Below, one piece after another: positions 598 through 60,648 of a stretch of DNA of 64,000 nt. This DNA comes from Hemiscyllium ocellatum (taxonomy: Eukaryota): positions 486,015 to 550,014 of the forward strand of contig NW_026867489.1 in assembly GCF_020745735.1 (NCBI RefSeq), in the 5' to 3' direction. A program made the position numbers and the translations under genes. Positions within the stretch are counted from its first letter, which is position 1. Each line of letters opens with the position of its first letter. The notes beneath the pieces were generated by a model. That model was given only the letters and a program-made list of their open reading frames with translations, ran no database searches and was not told where the DNA came from.

Positions 598-1499
598 TCA
601 CGTTCTAAAACAACTCACGAGTGTAACACAGGGACACATTAACATTTTCTTTAGTTCTTTTCGGACTTTGTTCTGCGATATTGCATAAATGAAGACGTTA
701 TTACAAGAACTAAGTAACGTGAGAAAAATGGCCATCTCTTGTAGGATGTATTGCGGGTCACTGAAATTCAGACCCGTGAAGTAACCTTCACCTGAAACAC
801 GCACATAGAGAAAACGCCCAACGTAAGTGGCCCACATGAGTAGGAAACTAAGCGAAATAGTGAAAAGTAGAATAATAGACCTCTTGCGGTTGATCATTTC
901 CTGATCTCCATGAGGTTTGGTGCATCGGAGCCTCCTCCGGGCTCTGCTGACTGCCAAGATGTGTCCTGCAGTCATGGCATTGAGTAGCAGAATGAGGAAA
1001 AACGGGAGAAATGGGGTTAAAATCTGTTCTAGCATGTCAAAGGCCTGCCAGAATGGATCAGTGTAATACGTGGACTTGACATCACAGAACCAGGACATCC
1101 CATCCAGGATGTACAAGGGTTGTGTGTTGATGTAGAGAGGGACATTCTTGATACAGCAGAGTGCGCAAACTGTTCCAATGACCAGCGATGCAGTTTTCTC
1201 TGTGCAATATTTGGTCTTCAGGCTCTGGCAGCAGATGGCCACGGAACGGTCTATTGTGAAGGCAACTGTCAACCAAACAGAGGCGTCCCGGATGGCAAAG
1301 GCCATCGTGATAATTAAACTACAGGCGGGGGTCGTGGATAGGACACTAAATCGAAAATAAATGCCACTTATCCTGTTGATAATGACTGCAACAGTTATTA
1401 CAAGGAAATCAGTCACTGCTATTGCAACAAGGTAGGAGGTAATGCAACGAGACAGTCCACACCTTCTTCGTGATAAGATTACCATCGCAACCAAGTTGG
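598..1499 (-). CDS. GPR139/GPR142-like class A GPCR #1, exon 2 (TM1-end to C-terminus; full CDS = exon 1 2929-2998 + exon 2, 323 aa)
   Basis: 298-aa ORF with seven hydrophobic segments and rhodopsin-family motifs: TM2 LVAIAVTD, TM3 FTIDRSVAICC, TM5 PFLPFFLILLLN, TM7 SSCNNVFIY. Acceptor ...ttttacag precedes 1499 on the minus strand; the phase-1 junction gives G|CC AAC TTG (A-N-L, the TM1 Asn). Confidence 0.92.
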
Positions 1500-2928
1500 C
1501 TGTAAAAAGTAAAAATAAAGATGGAATTGGTATGATGCACTGTCCAAGTCGCAGCTAATACTGCGGCAAACAATCGTGTTTCCACGTTCAGATTTTGAAC
1601 TTTGAAAGACTTTGTTAATTGTCAGCAGCACAAATTCCATTCATTGTTTCCTAATTTATTTTCTGTGCCAAAGCGTTATGCTTAAGGCAAATTAGACCAC
1701 TGGCTGAGCATGTTGTTAGCATTCAAAGCCCAATCAAATCATCAACGTTATCAAACCAGATTTGTCTGGCATTCCCAGTTGAACAATGTCGCATGAGCCG
1801 AATTTTCAAAACAAAACCATATTGTGATGATATTTTCATCCCTCTAAAATCTTGCAACCATTTCAGCTTGCAGAGTATCTCTAACTTATCATGGTATTTC
1901 TCGGGATAATGAGAGGGCACACAATCGCTTTCTCACTCTTACGAATGCCTTCCTTTGCTAAAACAAAACCTTCACATTTCGAACCCTCTTCTTCAATATT
2001 GCTGACGTTCTGTCCTGCTTTAAGATGTTCAATAAAATCTGAATCTTTAATTAAGCTATAGGCCAATTATGGACTTAGGTTGTTCTTTTTTTTTCTGTTT
2101 AAGGCTTCTGTAACATATCACATTGCACATACTACACTGGCTAAACGCTACATTCTCAGGTGTTAATTAGCAATGTTAAGAAAAGTTAACGCTATCGTTT
2201 GCACGACATTGTAATTAATATGAAATGGCAAAATCATACAAAGCTGATAAACTCTTACAGCAGAAAGGCGAAACGCAGAAAAACTAAAACATCTTACTTC
2301 TTCACCCATTTCTTACACTCAATTCCACATTGAATAAGCAAGACCATTTTAATACTGGGACTGGTGGACCGGAACTCATTCCTTAGTAACCAAGGCAGGC
2401 TCCCAAATCTCACACCATATACTGTTTCATCACTGTAATTGATTCTCTACTACAACTCATCAAATTCAATGATTGCATGTAATCATTCCAATTCTCTGCC
2501 AATAACCGGGCTGAAATGCATTCATTTTTTCCATAATATTATGCGTTCTTACTAGATGACACCAAAACTTCGAACTTGCATTCTGCAAAGTTAAAATGAA
2601 ACTTAAACTTCCATAATTTCCAGATGATTGAGCAGATAGTGGACAGGGAAGTTCTGAAATTTTGTAACTGCTATTCCATCAATGCGAGTCTTAATGAAGT
2701 GATTATTACCGTGTAATGCTCAAAACTGCAAGCGCAAGTGATGCACGATAATACACTTCATAGAGTTAGAATATCGCACAATCTATTTATATATTTTTCA
2801 ATGCAATTCAGGTTATTTACATTCAGGCAAAGCTGAATATTCAATAAATTCCGGCCGATCATGGAAGGGAGTAGATAGGTCTTGTCGAGATTTACAAAAC
2901 AAACATTACATTGTTAATTATTACTTAC

Positions 2929-2998
2929 CGGGAACCCCAATAAGAGCTATAATGGGATAAAAGATTGCAAAGAAGAGTCCATTTGGTGGCCCATGCAT
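2929..2998 (-). CDS. GPCR #1 exon 1 (MHGPPNGLFFAIFYPIIALIGVP+G)
   Basis: ATG at 2998, 23 codons + 1 nt, then GTAAGT donor (2928-2923). Phase matches exon 2. Clearly paralogous to 53233-53302. Confidence 0.88.
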
Positions 2999-3061
2999 CG
3001 TGGTCAACAAAGTAAACCAATTCTTAAGTTGTCGTAGCCTTTTCTTCCAGACGCTTGGATA

Positions 3062-3115
3062 ATCCCTCATTTATACAGAGTGAGAGTCTCCAGAGGAACA
3101 ATTAAGTTCCAACAT
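3062..3115 (-). promoter_or_regulatory. Conserved proximal upstream motif of GPCR #1 (TATA-like TATAAATGAGGGA)
   Basis: The block tgcatgttggaacttaattgttcc..gagactct..tataaatgaggga is shared with 24654-24705 and 53110-53167, about 65-120 nt upstream of each ATG. Confidence 0.5.
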
Positions 3116-3714: not shown

Positions 3715-4272
3715 TGAGAATGAAGATAATTGGAAAGGTGACCTTTATTGCAAAAGGTATATAATTAAAAATTGGGAAATGTTGCTGCAGTTATACAAAG
3801 CATTATTGAGAGTGGGAGTATTCTTCGAATTTTGGTTCCCTCATCTGAAGAAGGATGTAGTCTTAGTAGAGGCAGTTAGATGACGTTAACTGGATTGATT
3901 CCAAAGATGATTGATTTGATTTATGCATGGAGATAACTCATGAATTGAAGCGTAATGGAATATTTAATAATTTCCTAGATGAAGTAGTTACAAAAGCATC
4001 CACGAAGCTTGGCACAATTCACTATAAAGCAGAGCACTTGACTGGCATCACGTCCACAAGCACCCAATCCCCACTGCCGAGAACTTCTACCAGCAGTGTG
4101 TGCACCTTACAAAATGCACTGCAGAAATTCATTGTTGATAATTATCCAGCAACTTTCAATCTTAACACCATTTACTTTCAGGAGGGCAAGTGCAGATATA
4201 TGAAAATGCCATCAGCAGCAAGTTCGGTTTGACGTCACTCGCCATCCAGTCTTGGAAATATATTACCATTCT
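3715..4272 (+). mobile_element. CR1/L2 LINE 3' fragments
   Basis: Degenerate RT C-terminal coding remnants (ttggttccctcatctgaagaaggatg) and the shark LINE tail cagcagtgtgtgcacc..aaatgcactgcagaaattc, which recurs at ~15000-15205 and ~23005-23130. Confidence 0.6.
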
Positions 4273-4274
4273 CC

Positions 4275-4412
4275 CAGTCCCTCCTCCCTACCTTTTATCT
4301 TAGCCTGCCTGGCACACTCTCCTCATTCCTGATGAAGGGGTCTGGCCCGAAACGTCGAATTTCCTGTGCCTGGGATGCTGCCTGACCTGCTGAGCTTTAA
4401 CCAGCAACACAT
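4275..4412 (+). mobile_element. Penelope-like terminal repeat with minimal hammerhead ribozyme motif (4325-4360)
   Basis: ATTC-CTGATGA-A-GGGGTCTGGCCC-GAAA-CGTC-GAAT, followed by the tail gatgctgcctgacctgctg. Confidence 0.7.
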
Positions 4413-7046: not shown

Positions 7047-7420
7047 GGTTTTTGTACGGGGACTACTGTGCCGTACAGCAGTGTGTGTCCCATGGCACAA
7101 AAGTACACAGCACAGTTTGAGAGAAGAACCTGAGCAACATTTAAACAAAGTGTTTTCTTTCCATTGTACAAAACGGCAAACAAACTGTCTTGAAAATCTC
7201 CTGACATACCTCTTTTCCCCGTGCTGAATACTTTCACTAAATATCTCGGATTGTCTCAAGTATATGAATGTACTAGATTACAGTTCGACCAGATGCTGTG
7301 GAAAAACGACTGCTCTGCCATTCCACGACAATTAATTTGCGAATATTCTGGAATACTGCATCTTCGCCGTTTGTCTCTGCAACAAAGCACAATCTACCGA
7401 GTGTCTGGGAAACTTTATAA
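7047..7420 (-). pseudogene. TCR alpha/delta-type V pseudogene with near-consensus 23-RSS
   Basis: Minus-strand frame reads *DNPRYLVKVFSTGKRGMSGDFQDSLFAVLYNGKKTLCLNVAQVLLSNCAVYFCAMG, then CACACTG (7085-7079) / 23 nt / ACAAAAACC (7055-7047). The 5' part (KVSQT...) is frameshifted and has stops; the 5' boundary is approximate. Confidence 0.85.
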
Positions 7421-9519
7421 CTCGTGGTGCTAACGGTGAACATTTCAACAGAGACTGACCACGCAGCATGATGAATATTATCATTTAGGAGCATGGGGAA
7501 CACATGCCGCTTTTTCCAGTTTTGCACAATAACAACAGGATCAATAAAATATTTTGGGAGCTCCAACCCGACGGGGAAGAGTAAACCCAGATTTGGGGGA
7601 CACTTTGCTTCGAGGAAAACCATGGGGCGTTTCCTAAGAAACAGGATTGGTTGATACCTCCGAGTGGACAAAGTTTGTAACCAATCACTGTTTCTTCAGA
7701 CAAATTATGTTCTCTGGCTGTTTGCCTTTCTCTCCGTATCTGCTTCCCTATCTTTCTCTGTATCTGCAGCCTCCCCTTCTTTTCAGTGACGGTCTGACTC
7801 TCTCAATCCAATGTGCTTTCTGCATCTCAAATTACACATTCACTATGAATATACATTTCTTCTACTGTATCGCTGGAAACGCAAAGCGCTGAAATCAATA
7901 TTTTCCAACTGTTCCATTTTGATCAGTACACCAAAACTCTCCATGACTAACAACATTTACAAGAAGCTGAATATGATCATCTCACCTCTGACTAAAGATG
8001 ACCGTGAAAGCTACTGCACCAAAAATTCCCAGATTATAAAAAGAGTGTGAATCAGTTTCATTTCTGCATATTTTCTTTCTGCAGACAATGAAGTTCCAAA
8101 TATTATCGGGAATTGGGTGTTTTAATTTAAATAAAACCAACAGATATTGACAGATATGACAGGGTGATTAAGTGAAAAGAAGGCGAAATTAAGGTTTCAA
8201 TTTGGAGTCGATATTATTTCTGCCTTTATGTTTGTCTGGACTGACAGGAATATTAACAAAAATAATGACGCACATTTATTCAAGAGAAAATTGCATCAAC
8301 TTGCGATTTTATATATTTAGCAGGCAAGGGCGATTTCCCTCATATTATGAGAAGAGGGATCTATATCCTCAAGATTTTATATTCACTCCAGATGATCCAG
8401 CGACGTTAACGTCAAGGATACGTTGCCAGGCCAGAAAAAAAAACACACGAGATGGACTAATAATCTGGTTGACTGATCTGGATTCTAATCATGGAATGCA
8501 GGTATTTGCATTTACTTATTCAAAAAAAAAGCAATTGCAATTAGCGCTAGTATTTGACCGGAGTACCAAATTGTAATAAAACATGTTGTGTTGGAAAAGA
8601 AACCTGTTACTTTCTTTTATTTAGTTTGGGTTTAAGTTTTTTTGCGTACAAAGTTAAATATGAATTTCCCTCGAAATTTACCTTATTCTTTATGTAGCGA
8701 TGCAGATCTTTAATTGAAACAGAACAGTGCGGATGAAAGCAGATTGACATTTTCAGAATGTCATTTTGACAGTTTGTTTCATGCATTCATTCGCATAATA
8801 TAAGTATTATTTAACCTTTACTCTTTTAACAACTGAAATAGTATTACTTAGCAACGGCATTGGTTAAAAATACAACGGTTTTATTTCACAGAAGATTCAT
8901 TTGTCGTATTGTACTGTGCAAGGAATCCCTGCTGTTGAAGTATGTGACACAATGTTACACACATCAGAAGGTCAGCAGTAAAGCAGGGAGCGAAACAAAC
9001 TCTTCATGCGGCTACACAGAGCAGAATGTGGAATGGAAGACAAAATCAAGTCTGAGAACCATAATGATTTGGAAGAGCAGATGGATTGGGGCTCACATAA
9101 TGTGGAGAATAAAGAAGCAAAAGGGATAAGTTGAGCGACAGAGGCACGGTCATAAATTTGTCATCCGAAACACAAGATCGCAAAACGGGAGGCCATCAGG
9201 AAGGATGGGGCAGATTCAGAAAAATCGGGCAGTAAACGAAATTGAAGGAGTTTTCATACAATCATGAATAGGGAGACCGTGAATGCAATGAAGCAATCTG
9301 CAAACTGAGAGAAATGCAACTGAAATAACACAACGGTTTGGAGGGAAAGGAGATTATATGGTGAAGGATCGAGAGAAACAAACAATAGACGTGGCGACGA
9401 AGCAAGAAGCTGATTGGATCCATGTCTCGAGATGGAAGGCAGATAAACCAAAGACAAAAAAAAACTAGGCAAAATTTCCCAATGTTTCGAAAGGGGCAAT
9501 ATGTATTAAAACAAAATGA

Positions 9520-10922: not shown

Positions 10923-11809
10923 TCATTTAATTTGCCTAAATGGGCAAAGCAGCATACTCTTGAACTGCTCTCTGAATTTAGCTTGAGATACAACATAAAT
11001 ACAAGTATTTGTGCAACAACTCAGCATCTGGAGCATAAATCCAATTTCCTGTACGAAGTATGGTAATAATATAGCCTCATAACCCAACCAATACATTCGG
11101 TACCAAATAAAATACAGCATGAAAGTTGTCCATAACAGGATAAAATTCCCTGAGATAAAAAATAGTAAAACTATCGATTTTCTTCGCATCTCCATCTCTG
11201 GGTCATTTGCATTGTTCTCACCGCTCTGACGACGCAGTCTCCTCCTGGCTTTGCTTGTCACCAAAATATGCCTGATGGTTAAAGAATTAAACAGGAGAAT
11301 GAGGGAAAATGGAATTGCAGGTGTTAGAATGTGATGAACGAACTCTATTGAAGCCCAAATAAGAGATTCAAGAACTTCCATTGTTCCACCACAAAACCAG
11401 GGGATGTTCTCAAGCCAGTACTCATCCATTAGCACGAAAAACCAGAAAATGTTTTTGATGCAGCTCAATAAAGTCACTATCCCTAGAACAACTAGCGCTG
11501 TCTTCTTGGTGCAGTATTTATATTTCAGCTTCTGGCAACAAATGGCCACAAATCTATCAAATGTGAAAGTGATAGTGAACCAGACGGAACAATCAGTGAC
11601 TACGTAAACCAGGAAAGCATGGATATTGCACACGCGGACGGAATACAGGAAAGTAAACTGTGATTCGTAAGCAATAGGAATATGCCTCAATATTAGGTCA
11701 AGAACTACGACCAGTAGATCTGTTGATGCCATCGCTAAAAGGTATTGGGTGATACATTTGGAGAGGCCGCACTTGCCACGGGACAATATCAAAATTGTCA
11801 GTATGTTAA
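10923..11809 (-). CDS. GPR139/GPR142-like GPCR #2, exon 2 (divergent subtype; full CDS 327 aa with exon 1 15417-15513)
   Basis: 289-aa ORF with LLAMASTD, TFDRFVAICC, PAIPFSLILLFN and SCCTNTCIY. Acceptor tttctttgcag precedes 11809, giving G|TT AAC ATA (V-N-I). Confidence 0.92.

Positions 11810-12682: not shown

Positions 12683-12756
<74 letters not shown>
12683..12756 (+). repeat. (GT)~37 microsatellite
   Basis: Perfect dinucleotide run inside the GPCR #2 intron. Confidence 0.98.
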
Positions 12757-12758
<2 letters not shown>

Positions 12759-24840: not shown

Positions 24841-26377
24841 TTAAGTCATTGATGTTCGATAAAATCGTGCAGCTAATCATAGTTTTTTCCAGAAGTTTAT
24901 ACATTTTCCTTCCCAGACTTGTCAGAATTATTCTAACATGCAAGACTTTGATATTAAGGGTCTTCAACAGGTCTTCAGTGTTTGTAATACATTATAAAAT
25001 AATACCTGCACTATGGAAGATCATCGTGCATTACTTTCTTTTTCATTACAACGAAGAGCACTTTTGCATGCAGTGTAATTATAGACAAATAGTCCAGGAG
25101 ACACTGACTTATGGTGAATGACAATGCACGCACATTAAACGAGAATATTGTTACAGATTAGGATCCATTGTAATTCAATAAAATGCAATCTAGCGTTTTC
25201 GACCATTGTAGGATAGATTGTTTATGATGTTGTCGTAAAATGCCTTTCTGCACGCGTCTCAGAGCAGTGTCTGTATATGAATTATCTTGTCATAATTCAT
25301 TCAGCAATTTTTTTCATGCAAACCTACATTCAGTGATTAAACGAATTTACATTGAAATCGTAGAACGATGTAATGCGGTGTAGAGTTCACAGTGGACGGC
25401 ACCATTGTTAATCAGGTTTTGGAATTAATTAAAGTTTAGGCGAAAAGACATCAGTCGTCATGCAAAACTTTGAAGCTGTTGTTAGTTTGATGCTCTGCCG
25501 TGAATTTTCGCAGATTTTGGATGATTGTATTGCATAATAATTTGTCAGAAAATCTTTTTTTCACTGTTATCAAAACATGCAGTTGAACGTTGTCTCGGAC
25601 CACCTCGCTGCATAAAGGAAACACCGGTACAATTTAGCAATCCAATTTAGTTTTGAATTATATGAGATGGTATCAAATGATTTGATCAAACGAACGTCTG
25701 ACTGAATGGCAGAGAAGCAGAGCTGTTCAGGTGAAAATTTCAGTGATTTCGGTTTTAATCATTAAATCAATAACTGACATTGTTAGATGCATTAATTTGA
25801 CGAATACAGAGGAGATAGGATCAAAGTTAACAATTGTGTTATGTCATAGGAACGAATGTGGCGAGATGCTGGATCTTCTGAAAATTTGAAGGATGAGATT
25901 GTAAAGCGTGAGGCATTGTCAAGGAGCCAACGTTGGTTAACGGTTATGGGTGCAAGGATGTCTGCTGTTTGGTACGTGTACACTCAGGCAGCCATCTTAA
26001 TCCAGTTGTCCTGCATTGGACAAGTAGTCACTGACATTAACTCAGTGATTGGAGACTGATGCCTTTTTTACCGAGATTGATTGCATTGTCAGATGAAGTA
26101 GATGTGTGGTTTTAGACTTCGCAGTAGAAAGTCAGAAGTGAGAGACGTCAAAAGGTTATACTTGAAAAGACAAAATTTCAGAATGTTGGTACTTCATCAT
26201 TTCAATTGACAGATATTTGATGCTGTATGGTTGCCAAACATTTGTCAATGATTTTGGAACAGGAAAAGTTTGAAAGATGCAAGGTGATAGTTAAAGATTG
26301 TTTTGTAAAAGATTGTGTAAGTCAGAAGGCAGTGTTTGTATTGTGCTCAGCAATGTCTATCTCTTGATCTCTCACAA

Positions 26378-30995: not shown

Positions 30996-31079
30996 CTGCT
31001 GTCGTGGGGAACGGTGAATGGGCTCGGAGCACATTGAAAAGAAGCCTATACTTACTAAACTTAAACTTTAAAATAGACA

Positions 31080-35099: not shown

Positions 35100-36040
35100 T
35101 TCCCAAAATGCTCTTCACCTTCACTACATTTTCATGGTCGTTTTTTCGCTTCCCTCTCTCTTGCTCACTAATGGCGTATTAATTCCACATGTGTATTAAC
35201 CATCTCTTTTGCCTCAATGTTGAGACATTGGACTGTTGTACTATCTCATTTATTGTCATTTAAAACTGCTCTCACTTTGGAGTTTTCTTCTGTCTTTCTC
35301 ACTGAAACTTTTTCTTTCTTTATACCTCTCTCTCTCTTCCTCTACCTATTGCTATATGCGTCTGCTTCTCTCAATGACTTTCTGTCAGTCACTCTCAGTC
35401 TCTTTGTTTCTCGATTTCTCTACCCTTGAATGCTACATTTTACTCCAACTCACAGGTGTCTATCTGTTTCTCCATGAGCCTCTTTTATTTTTCTTCCTAC
35501 ATTTTGTCGTCATTCCGTCCGTGTTTCCTTCCCTATCTCGCTTAAAATGAATACATTTATGTCTCGATCTCTCTCTCTCCGTCCACAACGTTCTGCGCCC
35601 TCATAATTCTGCTTCTGCTCTCTCTCTCTCTCTCACTCTCACCGTCTCTCTCTCTGTCTCTCTCCGTTGTCACTCTCTATCTCTCTCTCTCTTTATCTAT
35701 CTATCTCTCTTCCGATTGCTCTATCTCGGTTTTCTTTATCTCTGTATTTCTGTTTCAGAATGTGTTCCAATCTTTTTTAAGTCTTTCTTTGTGTCACGCT
35801 TCCATATCTGTATTTCTGATTATTCTTACACACCCTTACACTCTCCCTCGCTCCACTTCCCTTTCTGTTTGGTATCCCTTTTATATTTCCCACTGTTTCC
35901 TATTACAAATTTGTAGCGGTATATGTGTCCTTCTATTAATCGTCTTTGCCTTTACTTTCTATAGTTATTTGAGCCTTCATTTCTCTTCCACATCAAACCG
36001 TGATATTTCTGTGGCTGGTTCTTCTCTTTCTCTCCACATT
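35100..36040 (+). repeat. Pyrimidine-rich degenerate (CT)n low-complexity tract
   Basis: Purer (CT)n runs at ~35560-35710; this tract produces the spurious L/S/F-rich ORFs here. Confidence 0.8.
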
Positions 36041-39143: not shown

Positions 39144-39483
39144 AGTTTCAGTGAGAGCATCCATTTGTATCCTGTCCCTGTGTCTATGACCATAATAATA
39201 AAGTGCACTGTCAGGCAAACACAGCTCGCTGATGGTGAAACTCCCCTCTCTTTTGAAATTACCCAGAAATGCAAAGAATTGTTTGCCAATACTTCCTGCT
39301 TTGAAACCCTCTCCATGAGATGGGATTAAATCATGGATGTGGAAATTCTCCACCGTACTTACTTTAGTTTTAACGAGTGGAAATTAGCTGAGATCAAATG
39401 CCTGAAGTGAAATATTACCGTAATTCCTTCTATCTGTGTCGCTGCAAGCGGCTCTTATTTGACCCAGTCTGTTCAACTGACAT
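39144..39483 (-). pseudogene. TCR alpha/delta V pseudogene, inverted paralog of 30643-30995
   Basis: GSIGKQFFAFLGNFKREGSFTISELCLPDSALYYYGHR (second Cys lost), with several stops in FR1/FR2. RSS is CACAGGG (39182-39176) / 23 nt / ACTGAAACT (39152-39144). The acceptor ctatatttctgcag is identical to that of its paralog. Confidence 0.85.
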
Positions 39484-42222: not shown

Positions 42223-42469
42223 TAATTTTGAACAGATCTTTCTGTGTCACTATTTCTGTCATTCCTACCATGCACAAGTTATTTTATTGTACGGCTCTTT
42301 TCGTGTTCTGTATCACTTTGTCAGTAATCGAACAATGTTCTGGTTTTTATACAGTTCCTTCCATGCCCTGTACGACTGTGCATTTGTTTTACCTCCATGT
42401 TTTCATACAACCCTACCAACCAAATATTCAGGATATTGTACAGCAGTATCCATGATATGTATCACTTTG
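42223..42469 (-). repeat. Tandem array of RSS-23-like units 3' of V-delta copy E
   Basis: RSS1 CAAAGTG/23/ACAATATCC; a heptamer-less remnant (nonamer-like ATGAAAACA); CACAGTC (42380-42374)/23/ATAAAAACC (42350-42342); a 21-nt linker; CAAAGTG (42320-42314)/23/ACAATAAAA (42290-42282); then a truncated unit AATAGTG (42254-42248)/16 nt/TCAAAATTA. Confidence 0.82.
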
Positions 42470-42766
42470 AGAACTGTGCACCCACGCCTTGCAGAATCTC
42501 TCAGTTATATTTAGGAGGTCATGAACCGACTGAATTTCACTCCTGTATGGATGGACGCAAAAATTCCTTCCCATGAAGCATTTTCTTTGTTCGCCTCTCC
42601 TCAAGTCTCTCTGTGAACGAAACATCTCGGGAGCCTGTTCTGTCAGCAGACGGCACCAGTAAACTTTCGACTGACAGAAGACCGAATATTCACACATCAG
42701 TGTAAAAATGTCAACACCCAACAAACTTTTGCAGAGGCGGACTTTGGGACACAAGCTAACTGGAAT
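42470..42766 (-). pseudogene. NAR-TCR 'supporting' V-delta-like pseudogene (copy E), retains extra CDR1 Cys
   Basis: After acceptor ttccacag: LVSQSPPLQKFVG / DIFTLMCEYSVFCQSKVYWCRLLTEQAPE / GEANKENASWEGIFASIHTGVKFSRFMTS*I*LRDSARRGCTV. Stops and frameshifts present; no leader seen upstream. RSS is CAAAGTG (42469-42463) / 23 nt / ACAATATCC (42439-42431). Confidence 0.82.
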
Positions 42767-45315
42767 CTGTGGAATAACATTGAGCATTATTAATAATTCT
42801 GCCACTGTTTACAAAGGAAAATTGTAAATCACCGAAATTAATCTGAGTTTTTTTTGTGACAGTTAACTTTGTTGGAATTCCATTGGACCTATTCTCTTTT
42901 GTTTTCAAAACATACATTGCTGAGATGACAAGATGACACTTTCTTATGTATGTCGACTTCCTATGTTGTCGAATGAGCTGCCAAAACGGATGATTGGAAC
43001 TGATTGAACAGCTGCTTTAAAAAGTGTAACGGACAGCAGCAGAATAAGGCAAAAAGCATGGTTAAGGGGGAAAAGCATCTTCAGTGGCAACAATTGTAAA
43101 AGACTCCAAAAAAGTCAGTAACCAGACGAGGGTCGAATGAAAACCTGTTTTATTCTCTGATGGATGTTATATTTTAGGTCCGATTTACTGTGATGAAAGG
43201 TAATCCCAAGGAAACCTCGTATGCTTACTGAGACAATTTCCAAAAATAGCTGCTCCAAAGCTATCCAATAGTTTTGTACCACAGTGCATGGCAAGACCGA
43301 GAAACAATGACGTGATTGATTAGTACTGAAAATTCAGTAATTTTCTGCAGTTGGCATCTGTCCAGGAAATTCCACCTGACCTTGTTGTTTTAAAATCAGT
43401 TTCTTTTCTTGTCTGTTTACCTGTACCATGAAAAATTTCACTTTATTTTTATTTATTCTCTGCATTTTCTTTATACCATTTGAATTTCTTCCAATCGTAG
43501 ATACCTGTCCCAACTTCTCTCAATCGACTGTTGTGGTGAATCTGCACTGCTGTTGCAGTAGTTTTGTTGTTACTTCGTAGAAATCCTCATTCAGCTCTTT
43601 CTCAGTTTAAATTATTTGCAGAGATTTATTGACTTCTGATTAATTCTAATGGAGAATCAGTTTTGTTTTGCCTTAATTCTAGAGATAGGGAATATACCGT
43701 TGGAACAAACTGATTTATGCCTGAGTGCATATACGCTAACGTCCATCCCAGTCAGAAATCTAATTGGCATTGCTTTAACAGAATGCGTTGTAGATGCACT
43801 CTGTTTGCCTACTAAGTGATTTTAAAATCTTCCATAAGTAACTCAATACAACGTGCTCCAAACTTTTTTTTTAGGTGGCGAGGTCCACATTCTCTGGATT
43901 ATTCATTTTGAATATTTCTCCATCGTCACGACTTGATTGTTCTGTTCGTGAACATAATGCATTAATGCCTAAATCCTCTTGGCTAAGTATCAAACACCCG
44001 GTCATGGCACATAACATTTCTCTGAAGTCTCACTGCGCCTCTGTGGTACTCTCGGAAAAGAGATTCAGTTAAAATGATCAAATTCTGGGACTGCACTGCT
44101 TTATGAGATACGGAATACACAGACTCAAGACAATCACTTCACTGAAATATAATGCCTCTCTGTAGTTGCAATATCCGATCCCTTACGCTCAAATTGTGAC
44201 TCTTTTCCAGACTTGTTTAGCCTGGAGTAAAAATCACTGAATATATTACCATTAAAACTTGGATCAGTTCAAAATAAAGCATTTTTCCTTCCTCTAACTG
44301 GTTAGCAACGTAGCGTCCACTTCACAATCGCTTCATACAGGACAATAACTTTATCTCAGGGGACTGTCTGATTAACCTTAGCTGCACTTGTTCCAAAACA
44401 AATCCAGGCGTACACAAGTATGCAGAGCAAACTTTGACCCACCATTCCAAGGTGGAACCCATTCAAGCACTTCTATCCACAGAGCTCAGCGAACCCTCTG
44501 GCGATGGAGTTGAACTTTGACGAATGCCCAAGGAGTTGTCAACATATTCGTTTTGATGAATTGTTTATTCTCGGTTGTAAATGAGCATTGTCCCGCTTTG
44601 GTTTCGTTCTCTTAAGCAGCTATATTACAGTCTAATGTCTCAAAACATCTACATTATGAAAAAAAAAGGTATTTTCAGTTTCACATTGGGACTGAGGCTG
44701 CAAAATTTGGAATGTGACTGCTTTTATGAAGTCATATATGAAAACAGTTGAAAATGGTAATTTGATCATTCGTTTAATGGATTCCCTAGTAAGGACAAGT
44801 CCTCGAGACATAAATTCATGGGTCCTATATGTGTTGCTCGCCTAGAAATGCTATCGATTTTCTAGTGGGACAAGTGTTTTAATTGAATCTTTGCAATCTA
44901 GGACCTCTTTGAGACTTCAATCTCTGCCTTGTTATGGGTCACTGTGATGCATGTTTTTTTTTAATCGAAGCAACAGACTGATTTCTGTCCAAGAATAGAG
45001 GGCAGAATTTCACTACTCTTTCCTCATTAAAACCAGATTATGTCACTGATAATAGTATCCGTGTCTTGACATGTGAAATTACTGATGATGCTGGTGCAGT
45101 GAAACTGCCGACACAAGGCTGGGTTCCATAAGAGACTTCTGCCTGAGCAATCCAGGATCCGACTCCCATATTGTCAGTAATTCGGATGCAGCAACGGTGA
45201 CTGTTCCTTCCAAAATGTGTGTTTTAACGTTCTTTTGCCATTGACGATCACAATAATACACGATCCATTCACTATAAAGATCGATAACACTTTGGAGTGT
45301 GGTGTCACTTCCAAA

Positions 45316-45769: not shown

Positions 45770-46046
45770 TAACTGTACTGAGCTCTGCCGAAATAGGTGG
45801 CGGTGCCTTCAAATCTGACAACCTGAATTTCTAATGAAAATGTATTTTGTGTTTTATTCATTATTATAATAATTCTACCGATGGTGCAGATCCGCTCCCC
45901 CTCTGTCGCTGACTGTGTTTGTATGAAGAAATGCCCATTATCAAAAAGGTAATTACAAAAAACAATGACCATTTTAAACACAGGTAATGGAGAGAGAATG
46001 ACGCTTCTTCCTTGTCATGGTTGTCGGATCCTGTGTAACTAACTGA
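45770..46046 (-). pseudogene. VNAR-like (NAR-TCR V) pseudogene
   Basis: QLVTQDPTTMTRKKRHSLSITCV* / NYLFDNGHFFIQTQSATEGERICTIGRIIIIMNKTQNTFSLEIQVVRFEGTATYFGRAQ. Matches VNAR architecture (short FR2-FR3 without CDR2, GR..TxNK..xFSLxI..V..EDTATY.C). Frameshifts, second Cys lost, RSS not recognisable. Confidence 0.72.
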
Positions 46047-47689: not shown

Positions 47690-48470
47690 ATGCCAAGTAC
47701 GGCAATGGAGCCTCCATAATCTCCATATTATTTCACAACGGAAGATTCCCCAGAAAGTTGTTAACTGGTCCGAAATAACTCACGTACTTCAGTCCTCAAC
47801 TCTCTCTTCTATCCCACCACAGCGATCCAGTTCCCATTTTCCTGACTTGCTCTCCCACCTGTAACCATATCAAGATGATAATTAACTGCCATTTTTGCCA
47901 GTGACATGCCACCACCAGACACAAATCTCCGTCACCTCCCGTATCAGCCCTCCCCAGGGACACTTGCCTGAAGGACATGCTGACTTCACGCCCAACAAAT
48001 CTGCCACCAGCCGACAACTTCACGAATCTTTCCACTACAATTACGGAATCTCTAGGTTTACTTCTGCCCTCCTTCGTGTCTAACGGCACAAGCACACCTT
48101 CCAGGTGAAGCAACGCTTTATCTGAACTTCTCACAATGTAGTCCACTGCATTCCCTCTTCACAATTTTGTCTCGTCTATATTGGGACAGCGAAGCATCGC
48201 CTGAGTGAGCGATTTGCAGAAGATCCACGTTCTGTCTGCGAAAAAGACCGGGAGGTTCTCGTTGCCGACAACTTCAATATGTCACCTTGCTTCCTGGCCA
48301 ACATTTCTGTCTCAGGCTTGCTGAAAAGCTCCAGCAAAGTTCAGCGTAAACTGATAGAGCAGGACCTCATTTTCCACTTGGGAACACGACAGCCCTCTGG
48401 ACTCAACGTGAAGTTCAACAACTTTGGGTCTTGAGCTCTCCGATATCCTCACACAGACCCCTCACATCAG
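47690..48470 (+). mobile_element. Penelope-like retroelement ORF remnant including GIY-YIG endonuclease
   Basis: FQVKQRFI*TSHNVVHCIPSSQFCLVYIGTAKHRLSERFAED...RKLIEQDLIFHLGTRQPSGLNVKFNNF at ~48080-48430. Confidence 0.8.
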
Positions 48471-48695: not shown

Positions 48696-51600
48696 TTGAG
48701 GAACTGACAGATGCAGGTATATTTACAACACTTAAAATGCATTTCATTATGTGCAGGAATAGGAAAAATTTGAATGGATGCTATGCTAGCCAAAGCATGT
48801 GGGAGAGTTTAACTGGGGAATATCGTTGACTTGGACGAGTTGGATTTAGGGGTGCTGTATTACTTTCTGACTCTGGGATATTTAACGTTGGACAGAGGAT
48901 TGATTATGTCCCTATTGATAGTGCACTTGACACTGCATTTCTAAACAATGATCCGAAATTTTCATAGCTAGTGTCTGTTTTGAGGATGAATAATACCATC
49001 TGACAAGTTAACTCTGATTTCCCTCCACAGATTGCTGATAGTTCCGCTGAGCGTTTCGAGTAATTTCAGTCTTTTTATTTTGTTTCTGTTGACGTACTAC
49101 ATCAATTTCTCTGTTCGTTTCACTTTCCAGGATCCACAGAATTTTGCTTTGAAATTAGATTTTAACTAGTTTAACAAGCGCCAACCAGATCCAGGTAGAA
49201 AAATGCAGTCAATGGAAAGCATATTCAGACTATGAAGGGGCTAAAGACAATAGTTCAGTCTTCTTGACATTTAATGGGAGAAAATTTCTCTTTAGTCACT
49301 GCCTCAGGACGTTTGACATATTGGACTGCAGTTTGGAACTGAAGGAAATTTGTTTCTATCGTCCTTCAAGATGGTAGAATTCGAAGGAGGAAGAGATTTT
49401 GTCCTTACTTGGATCAAATTGAGATGTTCACCTCTCACTCACACCCCTCCGACAGAAGGCAGAGCCTGGTGTCATTTCAGATCAGATGACAAGTCACTGC
49501 TGGAGATGGTCTGTGTAAACCTGTTTGTTTTTTTGTAACAATCCATTGGGTTCGATGATCACTTTCTTTTGATGACAGCCCCAGATATTATCAGAATAAT
49601 TCAGCTTAATTTTGCGAGTTGCTTCTAGCTAACTATAGGTCCTCTCTCATTGGCTTTTGCTTTCTGTCTAATCAATAGAACAGATCATTAGAAGATGAGG
49701 ACTTGTAGCAGGGTAAGTCAAAGCAAACAAAACATTTGGATCTGACAGACGATTTCATTAATTATTTTGCAGATTTTGAACTTGGGACAAAGAAGTACCG
49801 TTCCCAACAAAGATTAACCGGACATGAGAACCTTCATTCATGGATTTCTTTAAATTCATCTTAAGTTGCGGTTGCATCAAGAAACAATTATATTCTCAGA
49901 GTCTGCATTTGATTACTGCATCTGACCAATTCATCGTTGATGTTTTAGGAAACTGACTTAATTGTTGCTGAAATGTCAAGTTTCATTTTTACTTCTATAC
50001 TCGGGTACTTTAATCTTGTCGCTGTCCCCATTCAATCATTTGTTGTGACTGACGGCTTCAGAAGCTTTTTCGCATGCTAATTGTTGGGAACTTTGGATGT
50101 AATAGTCGGGATGGCTTGTTGAGGTCATACAGAATGTTGATGCCTCTTCTGGAGAACTATGTGCAGTTTTAGTTGCCCTGTTGTCGGTAGGATATTCTTA
50201 AATTGTTGAAGGTTCTGAAAACGACGAGCTTGTCAATAATACCGGTAAAGGATGTGAGTTGAGTTAAACAAGTAAGCTGGACAGCTCGGACGTCCATTAA
50301 TTTAGCGAAGGAGTTTGAGGGTTGACATTGTAGAGGTTTCTTTTTTAAAATAACGAGGGGCATAGCAAGGCTTTTATTCCATCGGATGGGCGATTCCAAA
50401 AGTAGGGATATATTTTTAGGGGGAGAGGAATACATTTCAAAAACGAAATGAGGGTCAACCTTTTCAAATTAAGAGTGGTCCATATATGAAAAGAACTGCT
50501 GGAGGAAGTGACGGATGCAGGTATACTTACAACACTTAAAATGCATTTCTTTACGTGCAGGAATAGGGAACGTTTGGAGGGATGTGTTGCTAGCCAAAGC
50601 ATGTGGGAGAGTTTAACTGGGGAATATCGTTGACTTGGACGAGTTGGATTTAGGGGTGCTGTATTACTTTCTGACTCTGGATATTTAACGTTGGACAGAG
50701 GATTGATCATGTCCCTACTGATAGTGCACTTGACACTGTATTTCTTAACCATGATCCGAAATTTTCATAGCTACTGTCTGTTTTGTGGATGAATGATGCC
50801 ATTTGAAAAGTTAACTCTCATGGCCCCTCCACAGATTGCTGACAGGTCTGCTGAGCGTTTTGAGTAATTTCAGTATTTTTATTTTGTTTCAGTTGACGTC
50901 CGACATCATTTTCTCTGTTCGTTTCACTTTCCAGGATCCACAGAATTTTGCTTTGAAATTAGATTTTAACTAGTTTTAATAAGCGCAAAACAGATCCAGG
51001 TAGAAGAACGCAGTCAATGGAAAGCATATTCAGACTATGGAGGGGCTAAAGGCAATAGTTCAGTCTACTTGACATTTAATTGGAGAAAAATTCTCTTTAG
51101 TCACTGCCTCAGAACGTTTGACATATTGGACTGCAGTTTGGAACTGAAGGAAATTTGTTTCTATCGTCCTTCAAGATGGTAGAATTTGAAGGAGGAAGAG
51201 ATTTTGTCCTTACTTGGATCAAATTGAGATGTTCACCTCTCACTCACACCCCTCCGACAGAAGGCAGAGCCTGGTGTCATTTCAGATCAGATGACAAGTC
51301 ACTGTTGGAGATGGTCTTTGTAAACCTGTTTGTTTTTTTGTAACAATCCATTGGGTTCGATGATCACTTTCTTTTGATGACAGCCCCAGATATTATCAGA
51401 ATAATTCAGCTTAATTTTGCGAGTTGCTTCTAGCTAACTATAGGTCCTCTCTCATTGGCATTTGCTTTCTGTCTAATCAATAGAACAGATCATTAGAAGA
51501 TGAGGACTTGTAGCAGGGTAAGTCAAAGCAAACAAAACATTTGGATCTGACAGACGATTTCATTAATTATTTTGCAGATTTTGAACTTGGGACAAAGAAG

Positions 51601-52563
51601 TACCGTTCCCAACAAAGATTAACCGGACATGAGAACCTTCATTCATGGATTTCTTTAAATTCATCTTAAGTTGCGGTTGCATCAAGAAACAATTATATTC
51701 TCAGAGTCTGCATTTGATTACTGCATCTGACCAATTCATCGTTGATGTTTTAGGAAACTGACTTAATTGTTGCTGAAATGTCAAGTTTCATTTTTACTTC
51801 TATACTCGGGTACTTTAATCTTGTCGCTGTCCCCATTCAATCATTTGTTGTGACTGACGGCTTCAGAAGCTTTTTCGCATGCTAATTGTTGGGAACTTTG
51901 GATGTAATAGTCGGGATGGCTTGTTGAGGTCATACAGAATGTTGATGCCTCTTCTGGAGAACTATGTGCAGTTTTAGTTGCCCTGTTGTCGGTAGGATAT
52001 TCTTAAATTGTTGAAGGTTCTGAAAACGACGAGCTTGTCAATAATACCGGTAAAGGATGTGAGTTGAGTTAAACAAGTAAGCTGGACAGCTCGGACGTCC
52101 ATTAATTTAGCGAAGGAGTTTGAGGGTTGACATTGTAGAGGTTTCTTTTTTAAAATAACGAGGGGCATAGCAAGGCTTTTATTCCATCGGATGGGCGATT
52201 CCAAAAGTAGGGATATATTTTTAGGGGGAGAGGAATACATTTCAAAAACGAAATGAGGGTCAACCTTTTCAAATTAAGAGTGGTCCATATATGAAAAGAA
52301 CTGCTGGAGGAAGTGACGGATGCAGGTATATTTACAACACTTAAAATGCATTTCTTTACGTGCAGGAATAGGAAACGTTTGGAGGGATGTGTTGCTAGCC
52401 AAAGCATGTGGGAGAGGTTAACTGGGGATTATCGTTGACGTGGACGAGTTGGATTGAGGGGTACTGTATTACTTTCTGACTCTGGGACATATAACGTTGG
52501 ACAGAGGATTGATTATGTCCCTATTGACAGTGCATTTGACACTGCATTTCTAAACCATGATCC
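48696..52563 (+). repeat. Tandem duplication, ~1805-bp unit, 2 full copies + ~250-bp third
   Basis: Duplicate ORFs offset by exactly 1805 (49350/51155; 50169/51974). The unit holds CR1 and Penelope fragments plus unique sequence. Confidence 0.95.
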
Positions 52564-53232: not shown

Positions 53233-53302
53233 ATGCACGGACCAGCGAATGGCCCCATCTTTGCCATATGTTATCCTATTCTCGCTGCAATTGGTGCCCC
53301 TG
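53233..53302 (+). CDS. GPCR #4 exon 1 (MHGPANGPIFAICYPILAAIGAP+G)
   Basis: ATG at 53233, 23 codons + G, GTTAGT donor at 53303; paralogous to 2929-2998. Confidence 0.88.
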
Positions 53303-54724
53303 GTTAGTAATGGCTCCGATGCACCCTGTTTTTTTTAATATATATCTCCAGAAGTATTGTCTCTTTCCTTTCAGATTTGTACTGAATGTATTTAACATTC
53401 TGTGATTTCTGTGCAATAGGGGTTCAATCACGTCCTAATTTACTATTTGCATTACATGATATTTTGGGGTGTTATGTCTACTATTGAATACATTACTTCA
53501 TTGCACTTGTGTTCTGGGCATTAGCGTATGATAGTCAAATTATTGTGATGCATCCCTATATAAAGACCGCTTAATAATTTCGGGGGAACAATTGGTAATG
53601 TCTAACTTTGAATTAGTCTGAAGTTGTTGATCATTATATCCAATCCTAATGTAGCAAAGCCAAACCTTGTGTTTTCATATCTGCGGGAATATTGGTGTAT
53701 CACAGTGTAGGACATAATTTGCTTTTTTAATTATTGGTCCAGAAAATGAATAGTTAGAGTACCATCATTACATCATATAAAACGAAAAGATTTAAGTGAT
53801 TGTACGAGTGTACAGCACGTCATCTATTCACAGTTTAACGAAGCCACGATGCGAAATCCCAGTTGTGAACGTGGTTTTAGGCATTTTTAATAGCACCATT
53901 TGAAAGGTCCGAATGGTGATCCAAGATTCGCCATACTAAGCAATTGTCTTTTTATGATAATTTTTTGTATGCTTATATGTTTTTATGTTTAACAATTACG
54001 TGGGTATAACTGTTGGTGGTAACTGCAACAGTAATGTTTTACTTCACTTTGGAATGTAGTTTCACTTGTTCCTTCAGAGCTTCATTTGGTTTCATGCAGA
54101 CCTTTACATAAGGGGAAATACGATTATCAGGTTGAAAAATGGGAGATTTAAAGAATTGGCTGAAGAGCAAAAAAAATAGGCTCCCACCTGGGGACAGAAT
54201 TAGAAGTTTGGGCCTTGACACGACTGAAAGGACAAATGTGCTGGAGATGCCCAAGGCCAGAAAGTAGGCATCAGGCGATCTCAGATGGCTTTGGTTGTGG
54301 AGGGGATGCGGGTGACTATGGTATGTGTTTTTTTCAGTTTGAAGAGTAGGATTATCTTACGGTGATAATGCTGGAATTCAAGCCAATGTAGTTCAGCATG
54401 AATAGACGTTGATGGATGGATTTGATGCAATCAGTACACGGTTTTGCAAATGTATCCATTCAGGTTAAACTGGAAAGCCAGCTACACGGACTGATTGAGT
54501 CACTGTTCTGCATTGTTAGTGGTAGCGACAAATTGAAATGACTTTTGTCACCTCCAGTATTTAACCCACATTTGAATGGTGAACAAATGTGATTTGCTTT
54601 ACAATATTACAAGTCTGGGGGTATCTAGGGGAGAAATCTGAAAGTTTCTGCAGAAGATTGACTGGGAAAGTAGCTTGTGTTTATATTTCACTCGAAGATA
54701 TTTCGCTCTTTTGATGTCTTACAG

Positions 54725-55626
54725 CTAATTTGGCAACGATAGTGATCCTTTTCCAAAAAAGGTGCGGTCTGTCTCGTGGTATCACCTACTACTTACTGTC
54801 AATTGCAGTAACTGATTTCATTGTCATCATTGTTGCTGTCATAATCAATCGGATTGGGAGCATTTACTTTAGATACAGCCTTCTATCAACCACCCCTGGC
54901 TGCAGTATCAGCACTGTTTTGGTCTATATCAGCCGGGATAGCTCCGTTTGGTTGACTGTTACATTCACCCTCGACCGTTTTGTTGCCATCTGCTGCCAGA
55001 GCCTGAAGACCAGATACTGCACTGAGAAAATTGCGTCAGTCATCATAGGAATTGTCTGTCTACTGAGCTGTGTCAAGAACGCCCCTTTCTTCTTTGTCTA
55101 CCAGCCCTTATACATTCTGGACGGGAAGCCCTGGTTCTGTGACTTAAAGTCCAGTTATTATACCTTGCCGGCTTGGAAGTGTTATCAATGGATGGACCAC
55201 ATGCTGACCCCCTTCCTCCCTTTCCTCCTTATTCTCCTGTTCAACGCCCTGACTGTTAGACACATCATAGCAGCCAGCAGAGCACGGAAAAGACTTCGAG
55301 GTTCTGAGAATTCCAATGATGCTGAGTTGGCCAACCGCAACAAGTCCATTGTCTTGCTCTTCACAATTTCCCTCAGCTTTCTACTTCTCTGGGCCACCTA
55401 CGTCGGACGATTCCTCTACGTGCAGTTTACAGGAGAGGGTTATTTTGGCGGACTGGATTTTAATGATCCACAATTTATCCTTCAAGAAATGACCAACCTG
55501 CTTCAGTTATTCAGTTCTTGTAATAATGTATTCATCTATGCAGTGACCCAGACAAAGTTCCGACAGGAGCTAATGAAGTTGCTGCTCTATCCTTACACGT
55601 TCTTCAAACGTTTTATTAAACGATGA
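54725..55626 (+). CDS. GPR139/GPR142-like GPCR #4 exon 2 (full CDS 323 aa; close paralog of #1, opposite strand)
   Basis: 298-aa ORF with LLSIAVTD, TLDRFVAICC, PFLPFLLILLFN and SSCNNVFIY. Acceptor ttacag ends at 54724, giving G|CT AAT TTG (A-N-L). Colinear with #1 without gaps. Confidence 0.93.
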
Positions 55627-55676: not shown

Positions 55677-55830
55677 NNNNNNNNNNNNNNNNNNNNNNNN
55701 NNNNNNNNNNNNNNNNNNNNNNNNNNNNNNNNNNNNNNNNNNNNNNNNNNNNNNNNNNNNNNNNNNNNNNNNNNNNNNNNNNNNNNNNNNNNNNNNNNNN
55801 NNNNNNNNNNNNNNNNNNNNNNNNNNNNNN
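55677..55830. other. Assembly gap (154 N)
   Basis: Run of N 50 nt after the GPCR #4 stop codon. Confidence 1.
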
Positions 55831-58800: not shown

Positions 58801-59329
58801 AAGTAGGTATATCCATTAAGTTAATGCAAGTAGCTATTCGCCCCTGAAAAGCACGATTACAGTATACCCTTGCGCTAAATATTTGCTTGAGTCACACGTA
58901 AGCTGCTCGGGGCGTTAACGATTGTGTGTGGGAATGGATGTCTGATGGACTCCAGTAGAAATAGAATGAGAAGACATTGCATGAGTAAGTGATCATGGAA
59001 CACGTTGATCATTCTAATTAATTATCGCACTTATACATTCAAAATACACGTGATGGTAGAAGGTCATTTGTGTGATGATGCCGCTACCAATGTTCCCAAA
59101 CCAGCTTTCGGTTGTGGGTTCCTTATTGCTTGCTGCATGTACAATCTATGTAAATGAGAATGTGGGGGGTGGATGAGGGAATTGGTAGCTAAGTTTGCAA
59201 TGATTGAAAACTTGGCTGGTTGGTTGACAGCAAGCATTAAAGTCATAGTTTAAAGGCGGATATAAACAGATTGATCATGTAGTAGAACAGTAGCAGATGT
59301 GAATTGTCCCAAAATAATTATGAAAGGAT

Positions 59330-59990
59330 ACATTTCGAAAGAAGCAAATAAAGACAAGGAAATGTAAATGAATGTTAGGAAACTTGGAATCTCAGAGGAA
59401 CGAGGAATCTTGGTGTGTTTGTCGACAGATCGCTGAAGGCAACATGGAAGTTTCTTCAGGCAGTTTAGAAGGCAAAGGGGACTCTTGCCGTTATGATTGG
59501 AAGCATATATTACAACAGCAATGAGGTTATATTGAAGCTGTGCAGGACTTTGGTTGGGTCACAGCTGGAGTATTATGGGTATTTCACTTCTCTTTTGGAG
59601 TAATATGATCGCAGTCGAGGTAGACCAGAGTTAGTATAACTTCGTGGGAGTATGGATAGAATGGATACAAAGCAGCTATTCCCCTCAGTTGGACGATGAG
59701 TTAGAATGAGGCATCATTTTAAAATGAAAGACAGGTGGCTCAGAGGGGATTTCGGGTAAAAAGAAATCACCCAGAGAGTGGTTGCTTGAGTTGAGGTCGG
59801 GAAATTCAAAATTATCCAAACATAACTTGGAGGAGAGTTGAGTTTCGTGCTGCAAAGTATAGAATCAGCGTATTTTTTCGGGTATACTCCTGATGGGCTG
59901 AAAACCGTATTCTGAAATAGATGATTCAACGGTTTTGTTTTCTTGAAGTTATGATGGTAAGAGGAAATATAAAACGTGCTGATGCATGCT
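59330..59990 (+). mobile_element. CR1 LINE RT C-terminal/3' fragments
   Basis: gaggaatcttggtgtg..., ctgtgcaggactttggttgggtcacagctggagtatt, ttttaaaatgaaagacagg. Confidence 0.65.
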
Positions 59991-60229
59991 GGACGGGCGG
60001 TTTAACAGTATGATAGAATCGGTAATGTCTCTTTTAGGGTCTTGGATATTTCAGGCTCTTCTGCAAAAATATCTGTGACAGATTGATTCCAGGATACTTT
60101 GGTTTCGTGATAGCCCTACCACTGACCGCTAAATGCTGTGCTTTACTTTGTAGTTGAAGTTTTTTTGTGATTATGAACAAACCACACACCTCTATGAGGG
60201 AGAACCTCAGAAAGTTTTCAGCAATTTTG

Positions 60230-60648
60230 TAAAGAGTTCAGATATTTTTTCTATTATTTTGAGGATGAAAGCTCAGACATATACGGCATTGTCATCAGCT
60301 GACGCCCCAAAATGGTTAAACTGGTGAGTTTTATTCTGGTTCTGAGTTCTGCAGAGAAGCTCCTTATCTAGTTGTTGCCGGTACCAATACAGATAATAGA
60401 TGCTTTCTGTTGTACTGGAGGTGCATCTCAGAGTCATTGCTTCACGCTGTCTCCTACTCTCAGAAGGCTGAGACTGAGTTATGTAATTACCGTCATCCTG
60501 TTTTGTAACATGTTCAGAAGGAAGAAAACACTGTAATGAAAACTTCACTCGAATAATTATGCTCTTATATTTTGAGCACGAAAACAATGGACTATTTCTT
60601 ACCGACAATGAGAATTGTGAACAGAAGTCAGGTGCGGAATATCCGCGT
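60230..60648 (-). pseudogene. TCR alpha/delta V pseudogene with leader (60603-60648) and internally deleted V exon
   Basis: Leader (ACG)RIFRT*LLFTILIV+G, then GTAAGA. V exon reads DGNYITQSQPSESRRQREAMTLRCTSSTTESIYYLYWYRQQLDKEL, deletion, TSLTI..QL / DNAVYV*. RSS badly eroded (CAAAATA/24/ACAAAATTG). Confidence 0.85.

Follow-up and report, generated by a model that had tools for sequence, protein, structure and literature searches.

We analyzed a 64,000-nucleotide (nt) stretch of the Hemiscyllium ocellatum genome (NCBI RefSeq assembly GCF_020745735.1, contig NW_026867489.1, positions 486,015 to 550,014 of the forward strand), hereafter the window, in which genes for G protein-coupled receptors (GPCRs) are interleaved with the remains of antigen-receptor variable (V) segments. 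The window carries four two-exon class-A GPCR genes, three of them intact (A, B, and C) and a fourth badly broken, and eight V-type relics between the GPCRs: five V-alpha/delta-like, two supporting-V-delta-like, and one V of the new antigen receptor (NAR) type with a J-like element. All eight relics have stops and/or frameshifts. The features are listed below in their order along the window, with FR standing for framework region, CDR for complementarity-determining region, and RSS for recombination signal sequence.

GPCR-A, minus strand: exon 1 at 2998-2929, intron at 2928-1500 (GT..AG), exon 2 at 1499-598; intact, 323 amino acids, with DRS replacing the DRF of the family
V1, 7082-7368, minus strand: V-alpha/delta-like; frameshift (FR1 in another frame), stop in FR2, W41 lost, C104 kept
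GPCR-B, minus strand: putative exon 1 at 15471-15417, intron of 3.6 kb, exon 2 at 11809-10923; open frame of 313 amino acids
Supporting-V-delta-like relic 1, 20250-20513, plus strand: in-frame stop; C23 and W41 lost
RSS-like tandem array 1, 20533-20810, plus strand: 60-nt units, four copies by repeat finder, behind supporting-V-delta-like relic 1
GPCR pseudogene, plus strand: exon-1 relic at 24771-24839, exon 2 at 26320-27209; three or more frameshifts, five or more stops, DRF changed to NSF, exon-1 donor damaged
V3, 30663-30957, plus strand: C23 changed to F, stop, frameshift, FR2 deleted; C104 kept; 23-RSS at 30957
V4, 33678-33970, minus strand: C23 kept, W41 changed to C, stop in FR2, frameshift ahead of FR3
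V5, 39183-39445, minus strand: inverted paralogue of V3; stops, frameshift, C104 changed to Y
RSS-like tandem array 2, 42223-42469, minus strand: 60-nt units, three copies by repeat finder, behind supporting-V-delta-like relic 2
Supporting-V-delta-like relic 2, 42430-42775, minus strand: FR1-FR2 and FR3 in different frames, the FR3 frame with three stops
J-like element, 45352-45317, minus strand: YGFGTMVTVE, with an FGxGT motif
NAR-type V relic, minus strand: FR1 at 46042-45977, FR2-FR3 at 45954-45781; TAA stop right after C23, then a frameshift
GPCR-C, plus strand: exon 1 at 53233-53302, intron at 53303-54724, exon 2 at 54725-55626; intact, 323 amino acids
Assembly gap, 55677-55830, no strand: starts 51 nt past the GPCR-C stop codon, clear of coding sequence
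V8, 60276-60515, minus strand: best-preserved V-alpha/delta relic; C23 and W41 kept, about 25-30 CDR2/FR3 codons deleted, stop at the C104 position

An earlier note on this DNA had described the same order and state of these elements, and its description holds with four corrections, concerning the structure of the GPCR genes, the number of V segments, one open frame, and the gap. That three of the four GPCRs are intact is right once an overlooked first exon is added. All V segments are dead, as the note had it, but they number eight rather than seven, V5 having been overlooked. A 126-amino acid open frame over supporting-V-delta-like relic 2 is partly accidental, the FR3 homology lying in another frame that contains the three stops. 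Finally, the flanks of the gap are collinear in the shark Chiloscyllium plagiosum, where they stand 151 nt apart (154 N here).

The GPCR genes consist of a short exon 1 (55-70 nt) encoding the N-terminus and half of the first transmembrane helix (TM1), a GT..AG intron of 1.4-3.6 kb, and an exon 2 of ~900 nt. The stop-to-stop open reading frames (ORFs) at 598-1494 (-), 10923-11792 (-), and 54730-55626 (+) match Pfam 7tm_1, have no start codon, and open midway through TM1. For exon 2, the Pfam scores are 53.6 (A), 67.7 (B), and 77.1 bits (C) against a curated threshold of 30.5 bits, with profile positions 5-260 spanned. Full-length relatives have 323 amino acids and begin with MHGPANGP..., and tblastn with these proteins finds residues 1-24 ~1.4 kb upstream of A and C. 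In both genes exon 1 has an ATG, a length of 70 nt, and a phase 1 donor (GTAAGT or GTTAGT), while exon 2 is preceded by a pyrimidine tract and a CAG acceptor; once spliced, each encodes its 323 amino acids without defect. GPCR-B is a divergent member of the family (40-45% identity to A and C), and its putative exon 1 is a weaker match 3.6 kb upstream whose donor (GTAAGT after CCTG) and phase are as in A and C. A, B, and C thus agree in the phase of their GT/AG splice sites, and these gene structures are established, as is the intact or dead status of the elements. The GPCR pseudogene was also considered as a retrocopy, which is ruled out because it retains an exon-1 relic 1.5 kb upstream and has a counterpart in the whale shark.

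Some further observations concern the surroundings of these genes. A (GT)n tract occupies 12683-12757 within the GPCR-B intron. Immediately upstream of GPCR-C exon 1 lies a 1.8-kb tandem duplication (48698-52563, 96.6% alike), present as one copy in C. plagiosum and in the whale shark, with ORFs that have no detectable protein domain. The C. plagiosum gene model of GPCR-C uses another start (MRTLQQ) instead of the true exon 1, and the canonical exon 1 is intact there (piece L001, 11743-11812). Members of this receptor family appear to be overlooked or wrongly built by automatic annotation.

Purifying selection is established for GPCR-C. Its orthologues are intact in C. plagiosum (96% amino acid identity) and in the whale shark (84%), with the same two exons, splice sites, and open frames, and the three genes form a clade with support of 1.0. 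The ratio of nonsynonymous to synonymous substitution rates (dN/dS), an estimate that the earlier note had proposed, is 0.18, 0.17, and 0.16 for the three pairs among the window, C. plagiosum, and the whale shark—i.e. ~0.17—with dS at 0.10 between the window and C. plagiosum. Across the contigs of four DNA runs from a close relative, all indels among those listed are in the GPCR-C intron, and the ten coding differences listed include no stop. Runs X1-X4, considered as evidence of expression, are DNA: reads span the GPCR-C intron, and splice joints are absent. The claim that the receptors are selected therefore stands for GPCR-C (dN/dS of 0.16-0.18, intact orthologues) and does not extend to A and B, constraint being shown for C only.

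For GPCR-A and GPCR-B, the support consists of open frames and splice sites, and we asked how far their intact appearance can be trusted. It is improbable, in our view, that A and B are recently dead or unexpressed genes with frames open by chance, leaving C as the only working receptor. GPCR-A has DRS where DRF is family-wide, and it is 76% identical to its nearest annotated relative (GPCR-C is 96% identical to its orthologue), so present constraint on A is not established. Among the sequencing runs searched, no RNA run containing GPCR-A or GPCR-C was found. In addition, the protein-database search, for which the query was C only and not A or B, gave no exact protein match to the gene in the window, with the best match (96% identical) coming from C. 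plagiosum. Against this, frames of 313-323 codons run uninterrupted through both exons, whose splice sites are canonical and in the conserved phase, the neighboring pseudogene illustrates how fast stops build up, and the long-term dN/dS between A and C is 0.14, with dS saturated. A split of A and C before the galeomorph radiation, proposed from percent identity, was withdrawn; the tree puts both in an orectolobiform-only clade with weak support (0.62).

A homologue search with GPCR-C returned 982 proteins with E-values down to 1e-186, the best 120 of which are all from sharks or rays (E < 1e-106), and in sharks and rays the family as a whole numbers hundreds of copies. Its members bear the automatic names GPR139, GPR142, GPR15-like, galanin receptor-like, and FMRFamide receptor-like, and the look-alikes in the ESM Atlas are clusters from chordates (82-190 members) that carry the same automatic name. 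GPR139 is a human orphan or aromatic-amino-acid/peptide receptor. It is the best match among solved structures (PDB 7VUG; 35.4 bits, E = 7e-8), followed by rhodopsin (31 bits) and NMUR2 (28.6 bits), with CCR5 and GPR15 also close. The label GPR139-like, as used in the earlier note, is accordingly a weak one, as GPR139 comes top at 35 bits, barely above rhodopsin and NMUR2. Because this lead over other class-A receptors is weak, the best 120 matches all come from sharks and rays, and the automatic names are inconsistent, the family represents a separate shark and ray expansion, distantly similar to GPR139 and not orthologous to it. The literature search found no paper on this family.

Among the V-type relics, a word-indexed homologue search with the V8 piece gave no candidate, and Pfam returned just two V-set matches on the V pieces, both below threshold. 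An exhaustive HMMER search starting from the same piece yielded 53 proteins that bear V domains; the ones looked up proved to be TCR-alpha chains or multi-V gene models without names. Used as tblastn probes, and combined with comparison of the window with itself and searches of the PDB, these proteins gave the eight relics. V8 matches alpha/delta chains of T-cell receptors (TCRs) in the PDB at 6e-9 over FR1-FR2 (FR1-CDR1-FR2 being well kept), and judged by sequence its TCR-alpha/delta type is firm. That of V1 is a reasonable assignment, with a match to a shark TCR-alpha chain at 8e-5 and a weak one in the PDB. For V3, V4, and V5 the same type is suggested tentatively. V3 has a TCR-like FR1, whereas its FR3 alone is closest to antibody VH/VL in the PDB; V4 has no PDB match; and V5 is a paralogue of V3 (30346-31048 vs. 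39783-39090, 67% alike). None of V1, V3, V4, V5, and V8 is an uninterrupted V exon, and each is short of at least one canonical residue (C23, W41, or C104). V8 lies within an 860-nt block (59939-60797) that is missing from C. plagiosum and has the direct repeat GTTTTGT at both ends. An insertion that duplicated its target site could explain this, as could a deletion by microhomology in C. plagiosum; the whale shark is without all of 58.4-63.8 kb.

Two of the dead V segments retain recombination signals of good quality. An exact RSS pattern search of the window gave no match. Scored against CACAGTG-23-ACAAAAACC (maximum 16), nine RSS-like sites in the window reach at least 13/16, compared with 1.35 expected in shuffles, i.e. 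an enrichment of about six-fold. V1 keeps a near-consensus 23-RSS at 7085-7047 (CACACTG-23-ACAAAAACC, 15/16) and V3 keeps one at 14/16, while V4, V5, and V8 have no 3' 23-RSS at or above 13/16. The tandem arrays behind the two supporting-V-delta-like relics are RSS-like as well. In each unit an A-rich, nonamer-like stretch accompanies an RSS-like heptamer, and the unit at 42380 scores 14/16 as a 23-RSS.

The NAR-type V relic is identified by the piece at 45772-46014, whose top four PDB matches are VNAR domains, i.e. V domains without CDR2 (4e-4 to 2e-3), and its orthologue in C. plagiosum matches the NAR-TcR V of the elephant-shark gene model P0128 at 2e-4. The TAA stop and the frameshift are common to the window and C. 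plagiosum, and a change of C104 to G is found in the window genome only. As these lesions are shared, the NAR V was dead before the two species split, and the old age of its decay is established. Supporting-V-delta-like relic 1 has its best match in residues 467-529 of the same NAR-TcR-type model, which is the leaderless second V that follows the NAR-type V and J; no NAR V or J is detectable upstream of this relic. In the C. plagiosum orthologue of relic 2, an indel, a partial duplication, and a stop add to the damage. No D was identified in the NAR-type cassette of the window. A second NAR-like V, seen by eye at 44220-44472 (-) ("...AKVNQTVP", "SGRYVANQ...", and a leader-like stretch), found no support in two PDB searches. 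The same segment, between the J-like element and relic 2, is paralogous to 18423-18758 (+), upstream of relic 1.

We next considered the history of the neighborhood. Window positions 40.0-64.0 kb are collinear with C. plagiosum CM012999.1 (12.97-12.99 Mb) at ~92% identity, as expected of a related hemiscylliid (bamboo/epaulette-type) shark other than that species, and in the whale shark the order is exon 1 of a divergently oriented, pseudogene-like GPCR, the NAR V relic, and the GPCR-C orthologue. With the NAR V relic beside the GPCR-C orthologue in the whale shark, the pairing of GPCR and NAR V predates the split of hemiscylliids from the whale shark. The mosaic is therefore real and old, as the synteny check proposed in the earlier note bears out, and conservation of this neighborhood across the three sharks is established.

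Within the window, an old inverted duplication relates 18.4-23.5 kb and 30.3-31.0 kb to 44.3-39.1 kb (60-68% alike). Its two copies contain a supporting V-delta, an RSS-like array, and V3 or V5; as such, the two RSS-like arrays are paralogous parts of it. The GPCR pseudogene is in one copy only, and the GPCR paralogues have no common flanking homology, which is why joint duplication of GPCRs and V segments is not shown in the window. The earlier suggestion of such co-duplication thus finds no trace here, the only block duplication carrying V-type elements and the GPCR flanks being unlike each other. An early co-duplication followed by later loss might still be envisaged, and is not shown here.

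A 1.5-kb inverted similarity between 7629-9172 (+) and 37435-35894 (-) (63%, CT-rich, low complexity) is probably a repeated element, and a (CT)n tract occupies 35618-35710. The 102-amino acid ORF at 48126-48431 (+) ("...CLVYIGTAKHRLSERFAED...") is reminiscent of the GIY-YIG endonuclease part of Penelope-like retroelements, with no match in Pfam. Ten other long ORFs of the window also have no Pfam match.

Where the window lies relative to the locus of TCR alpha/delta can be approached through other species. In Mustelus asterias, a gene model with a TCR-alpha constant (C) region and a 72%-identical GPCR relative are on one 20.4-Mb contig. On the whale-shark chromosome NC_063373.1 (11.7 Mb), GPCR/V pairs occur at 2.49 and 4.78 Mb, 2.3 Mb apart. 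At the first of these (2,490,253-2,512,793), GPCR P0008, a family member 2.3 Mb from the GPCR-C orthologue, stands between a near-complete V-alpha/delta (piece 3874-4341, -; E = 8e-27) and an annotated 313-amino acid gene with two V-set domains (18026 onward). This double V-set gene may be a NAR-TcR-type cassette; it was not picked up by the TCR-alpha-type probes.

These data bear on whether the window is an orphon block, in which a V/GPCR cassette dispersed from a working TRA/TRD locus, the V segments died without D, J, or C partners, and the GPCRs are selected cargo. The death of all eight V-type relics would agree with this, as would the spread of the GPCR family over many contigs. However, two dead V segments retain near-consensus 23-RSSs, the neighborhood is older than the split from the whale shark, whose chromosome has a near-complete V beside members of the GPCR family, and the Mustelus contig has the TCR-alpha C gene model together with a GPCR relative. 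We consequently regard a dispersed block as unlikely, though it deserves some weight. Indirect evidence favors placing the window within or next to the TCR alpha/delta V region, which we rate clearly above an unlinked orphon block.

Given the persistence of this interleaving over long evolutionary time, we wondered whether the two families could be functionally coupled. The GPCRs might be expressed or regulated with lymphocytes (through chromatin control or monoallelic choice), or be targets of purposeful deletion or inversion when V(D)J recombination acts at the kept RSSs; the good 23-RSSs beside dead V1 and V3 and the existence of the RSS-like tandem arrays would fit coupling. Yet the runs searched offer no RNA with GPCR-A or GPCR-C, the GPCRs occur in both orientations, and they have no common flanks or promoter-like homology with the V segments. 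Moreover, loss of intervening DNA is automatic in any rearrangement of an upstream V, as for mammalian olfactory receptor (OR) genes (PMC4574546), and does not call for a function. We see no sign that the GPCR and V families are functionally linked, and give coupling very little credence.

Overall, the window is probably a stretch of V region, in or beside TCR alpha/delta, that is shared by two unrelated families under birth-and-death evolution, with interleaving as a by-product of location and no functional coupling. Under this explanation, two unrelated multigene families, one of GPCRs and one of antigen-receptor V-type genes, would have come to occupy one region and evolved there by birth and death. 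Purifying selection acts on GPCR-C, which would serve a role of its own, with the frames of A, B, and C intact, and that role would be non-immune, probably the detection of chemicals or peptides. The V-alpha/delta, supporting V-delta, and NAR-type V and J would have lost their function here long ago and decayed neutrally. Block duplication, inversion, and insertion or deletion would have mixed the two families, so that their interleaving would be an accident of location, like that of OR genes among mammalian TRAV segments.

Several points weigh against this explanation. The GPCR family is on at least 10 contigs in H. ocellatum and is not confined to one locus. GPCR-A has the DRS motif in place of DRF and a nearest annotated relative just 76% identical, exon 1 of GPCR-B is supported by a single weak match and its splice sites, and constraint is established for GPCR-C only, by conservation. 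A receptor that we call alive would be so by its open frame and conservation, not by expression. Placement in the TRA/TRD region is suggested by indirect pointers from other species, and the view that there is no coupling reflects an absence of evidence for it.

A more far-reaching possibility is that the shark and ray GPCRs form an undescribed chemosensory-type multigene family that expanded largely inside TCR alpha/delta V arrays, and that may share locus-level logic with V genes, such as open, duplication-prone chromatin or one-gene-per-cell choice. We see this as speculative and quite doubtful. To our knowledge, the few OR genes among mammalian TRAV segments are a long-noted oddity with no known meaning. 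If the possibility is true, sharks would provide a second and much larger case of odorant-receptor-like genes in a TCR locus. If shark TCR V arrays hold a different and far larger GPCR family throughout, retained from before bamboo sharks parted from whale sharks, the likely reading is that V arrays are generally permissive nurseries for tandem receptor families; the alternative meaning would be a regulatory property common to V arrays and this GPCR family. Sharks have a very small classical OR repertoire, and the GPCR family merits an expression survey for this reason. To such questions the window contributes a two-exon GPCR structure, a measure of selection on one receptor, V lesions common to two species by which the decay can be dated, and a dead NAR-type cassette as neighbor.

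The literature search found no description of GPCR/V interleaving in sharks, and the window can be compared with known systems in its separate parts. With GPR139 (PDB 7VUG), the GPCRs of the window have in common a DRY-type motif ahead of AxC and, in TM7, an NxxxY that lacks proline. They differ in that the similarity amounts to only 35 bits and in the inconsistent automatic names of the shark and ray family.

The NAR-type elements of the window resemble the doubly rearranging NAR-TcR cassettes of sharks, as these are represented in a later citation (Criscitiello, Saltis and Flajnik 2006, as cited in PMC12227049). Here too, a NAR-type V, a J-like element, and a supporting V follow one another in one orientation within 3.6 kb (46.0-42.4 kb, -). 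In contrast to those cassettes as cited, every part is dead here, the RSS of the J is degenerate, and the J and the supporting V are 2.5 kb apart. Also unlike the cassettes known from that citation, the supporting V segments of the window are trailed by 60-nt RSS-like tandem arrays.

At a larger scale, NARTCR V segments have been mapped within the elasmobranch TCR alpha/delta complex (PMC12227049). V pseudogenes and Ig-like V segments (TAILV) are present in these regions (PMC12227049), and the window is alike in its mixed V types, in its many non-functional V segments, and in probably belonging to a large, duplication-prone antigen-receptor complex. GPCR genes, by contrast, are a feature mentioned for the window only, with GPCR, GPR139, and G protein appearing nowhere in the text of that paper (PMC12227049).

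The closest parallel for the interleaving itself comes from mammals, where human OR10G2 and OR4E2 lie between TRAV1-1, TRAV1-2, and TRAV2, and the mouse has three Olfr genes (PMC4574546). The earlier note had drawn this comparison, which is fair as a resemblance. In both cases class-A GPCRs with no known immune role stand among V segments, in a position conserved across species (PMC4574546). By contrast with the mammalian OR genes, the receptors of the window belong to a shark and ray clade distantly like GPR139, have two exons, and are surrounded by V segments that are all dead.

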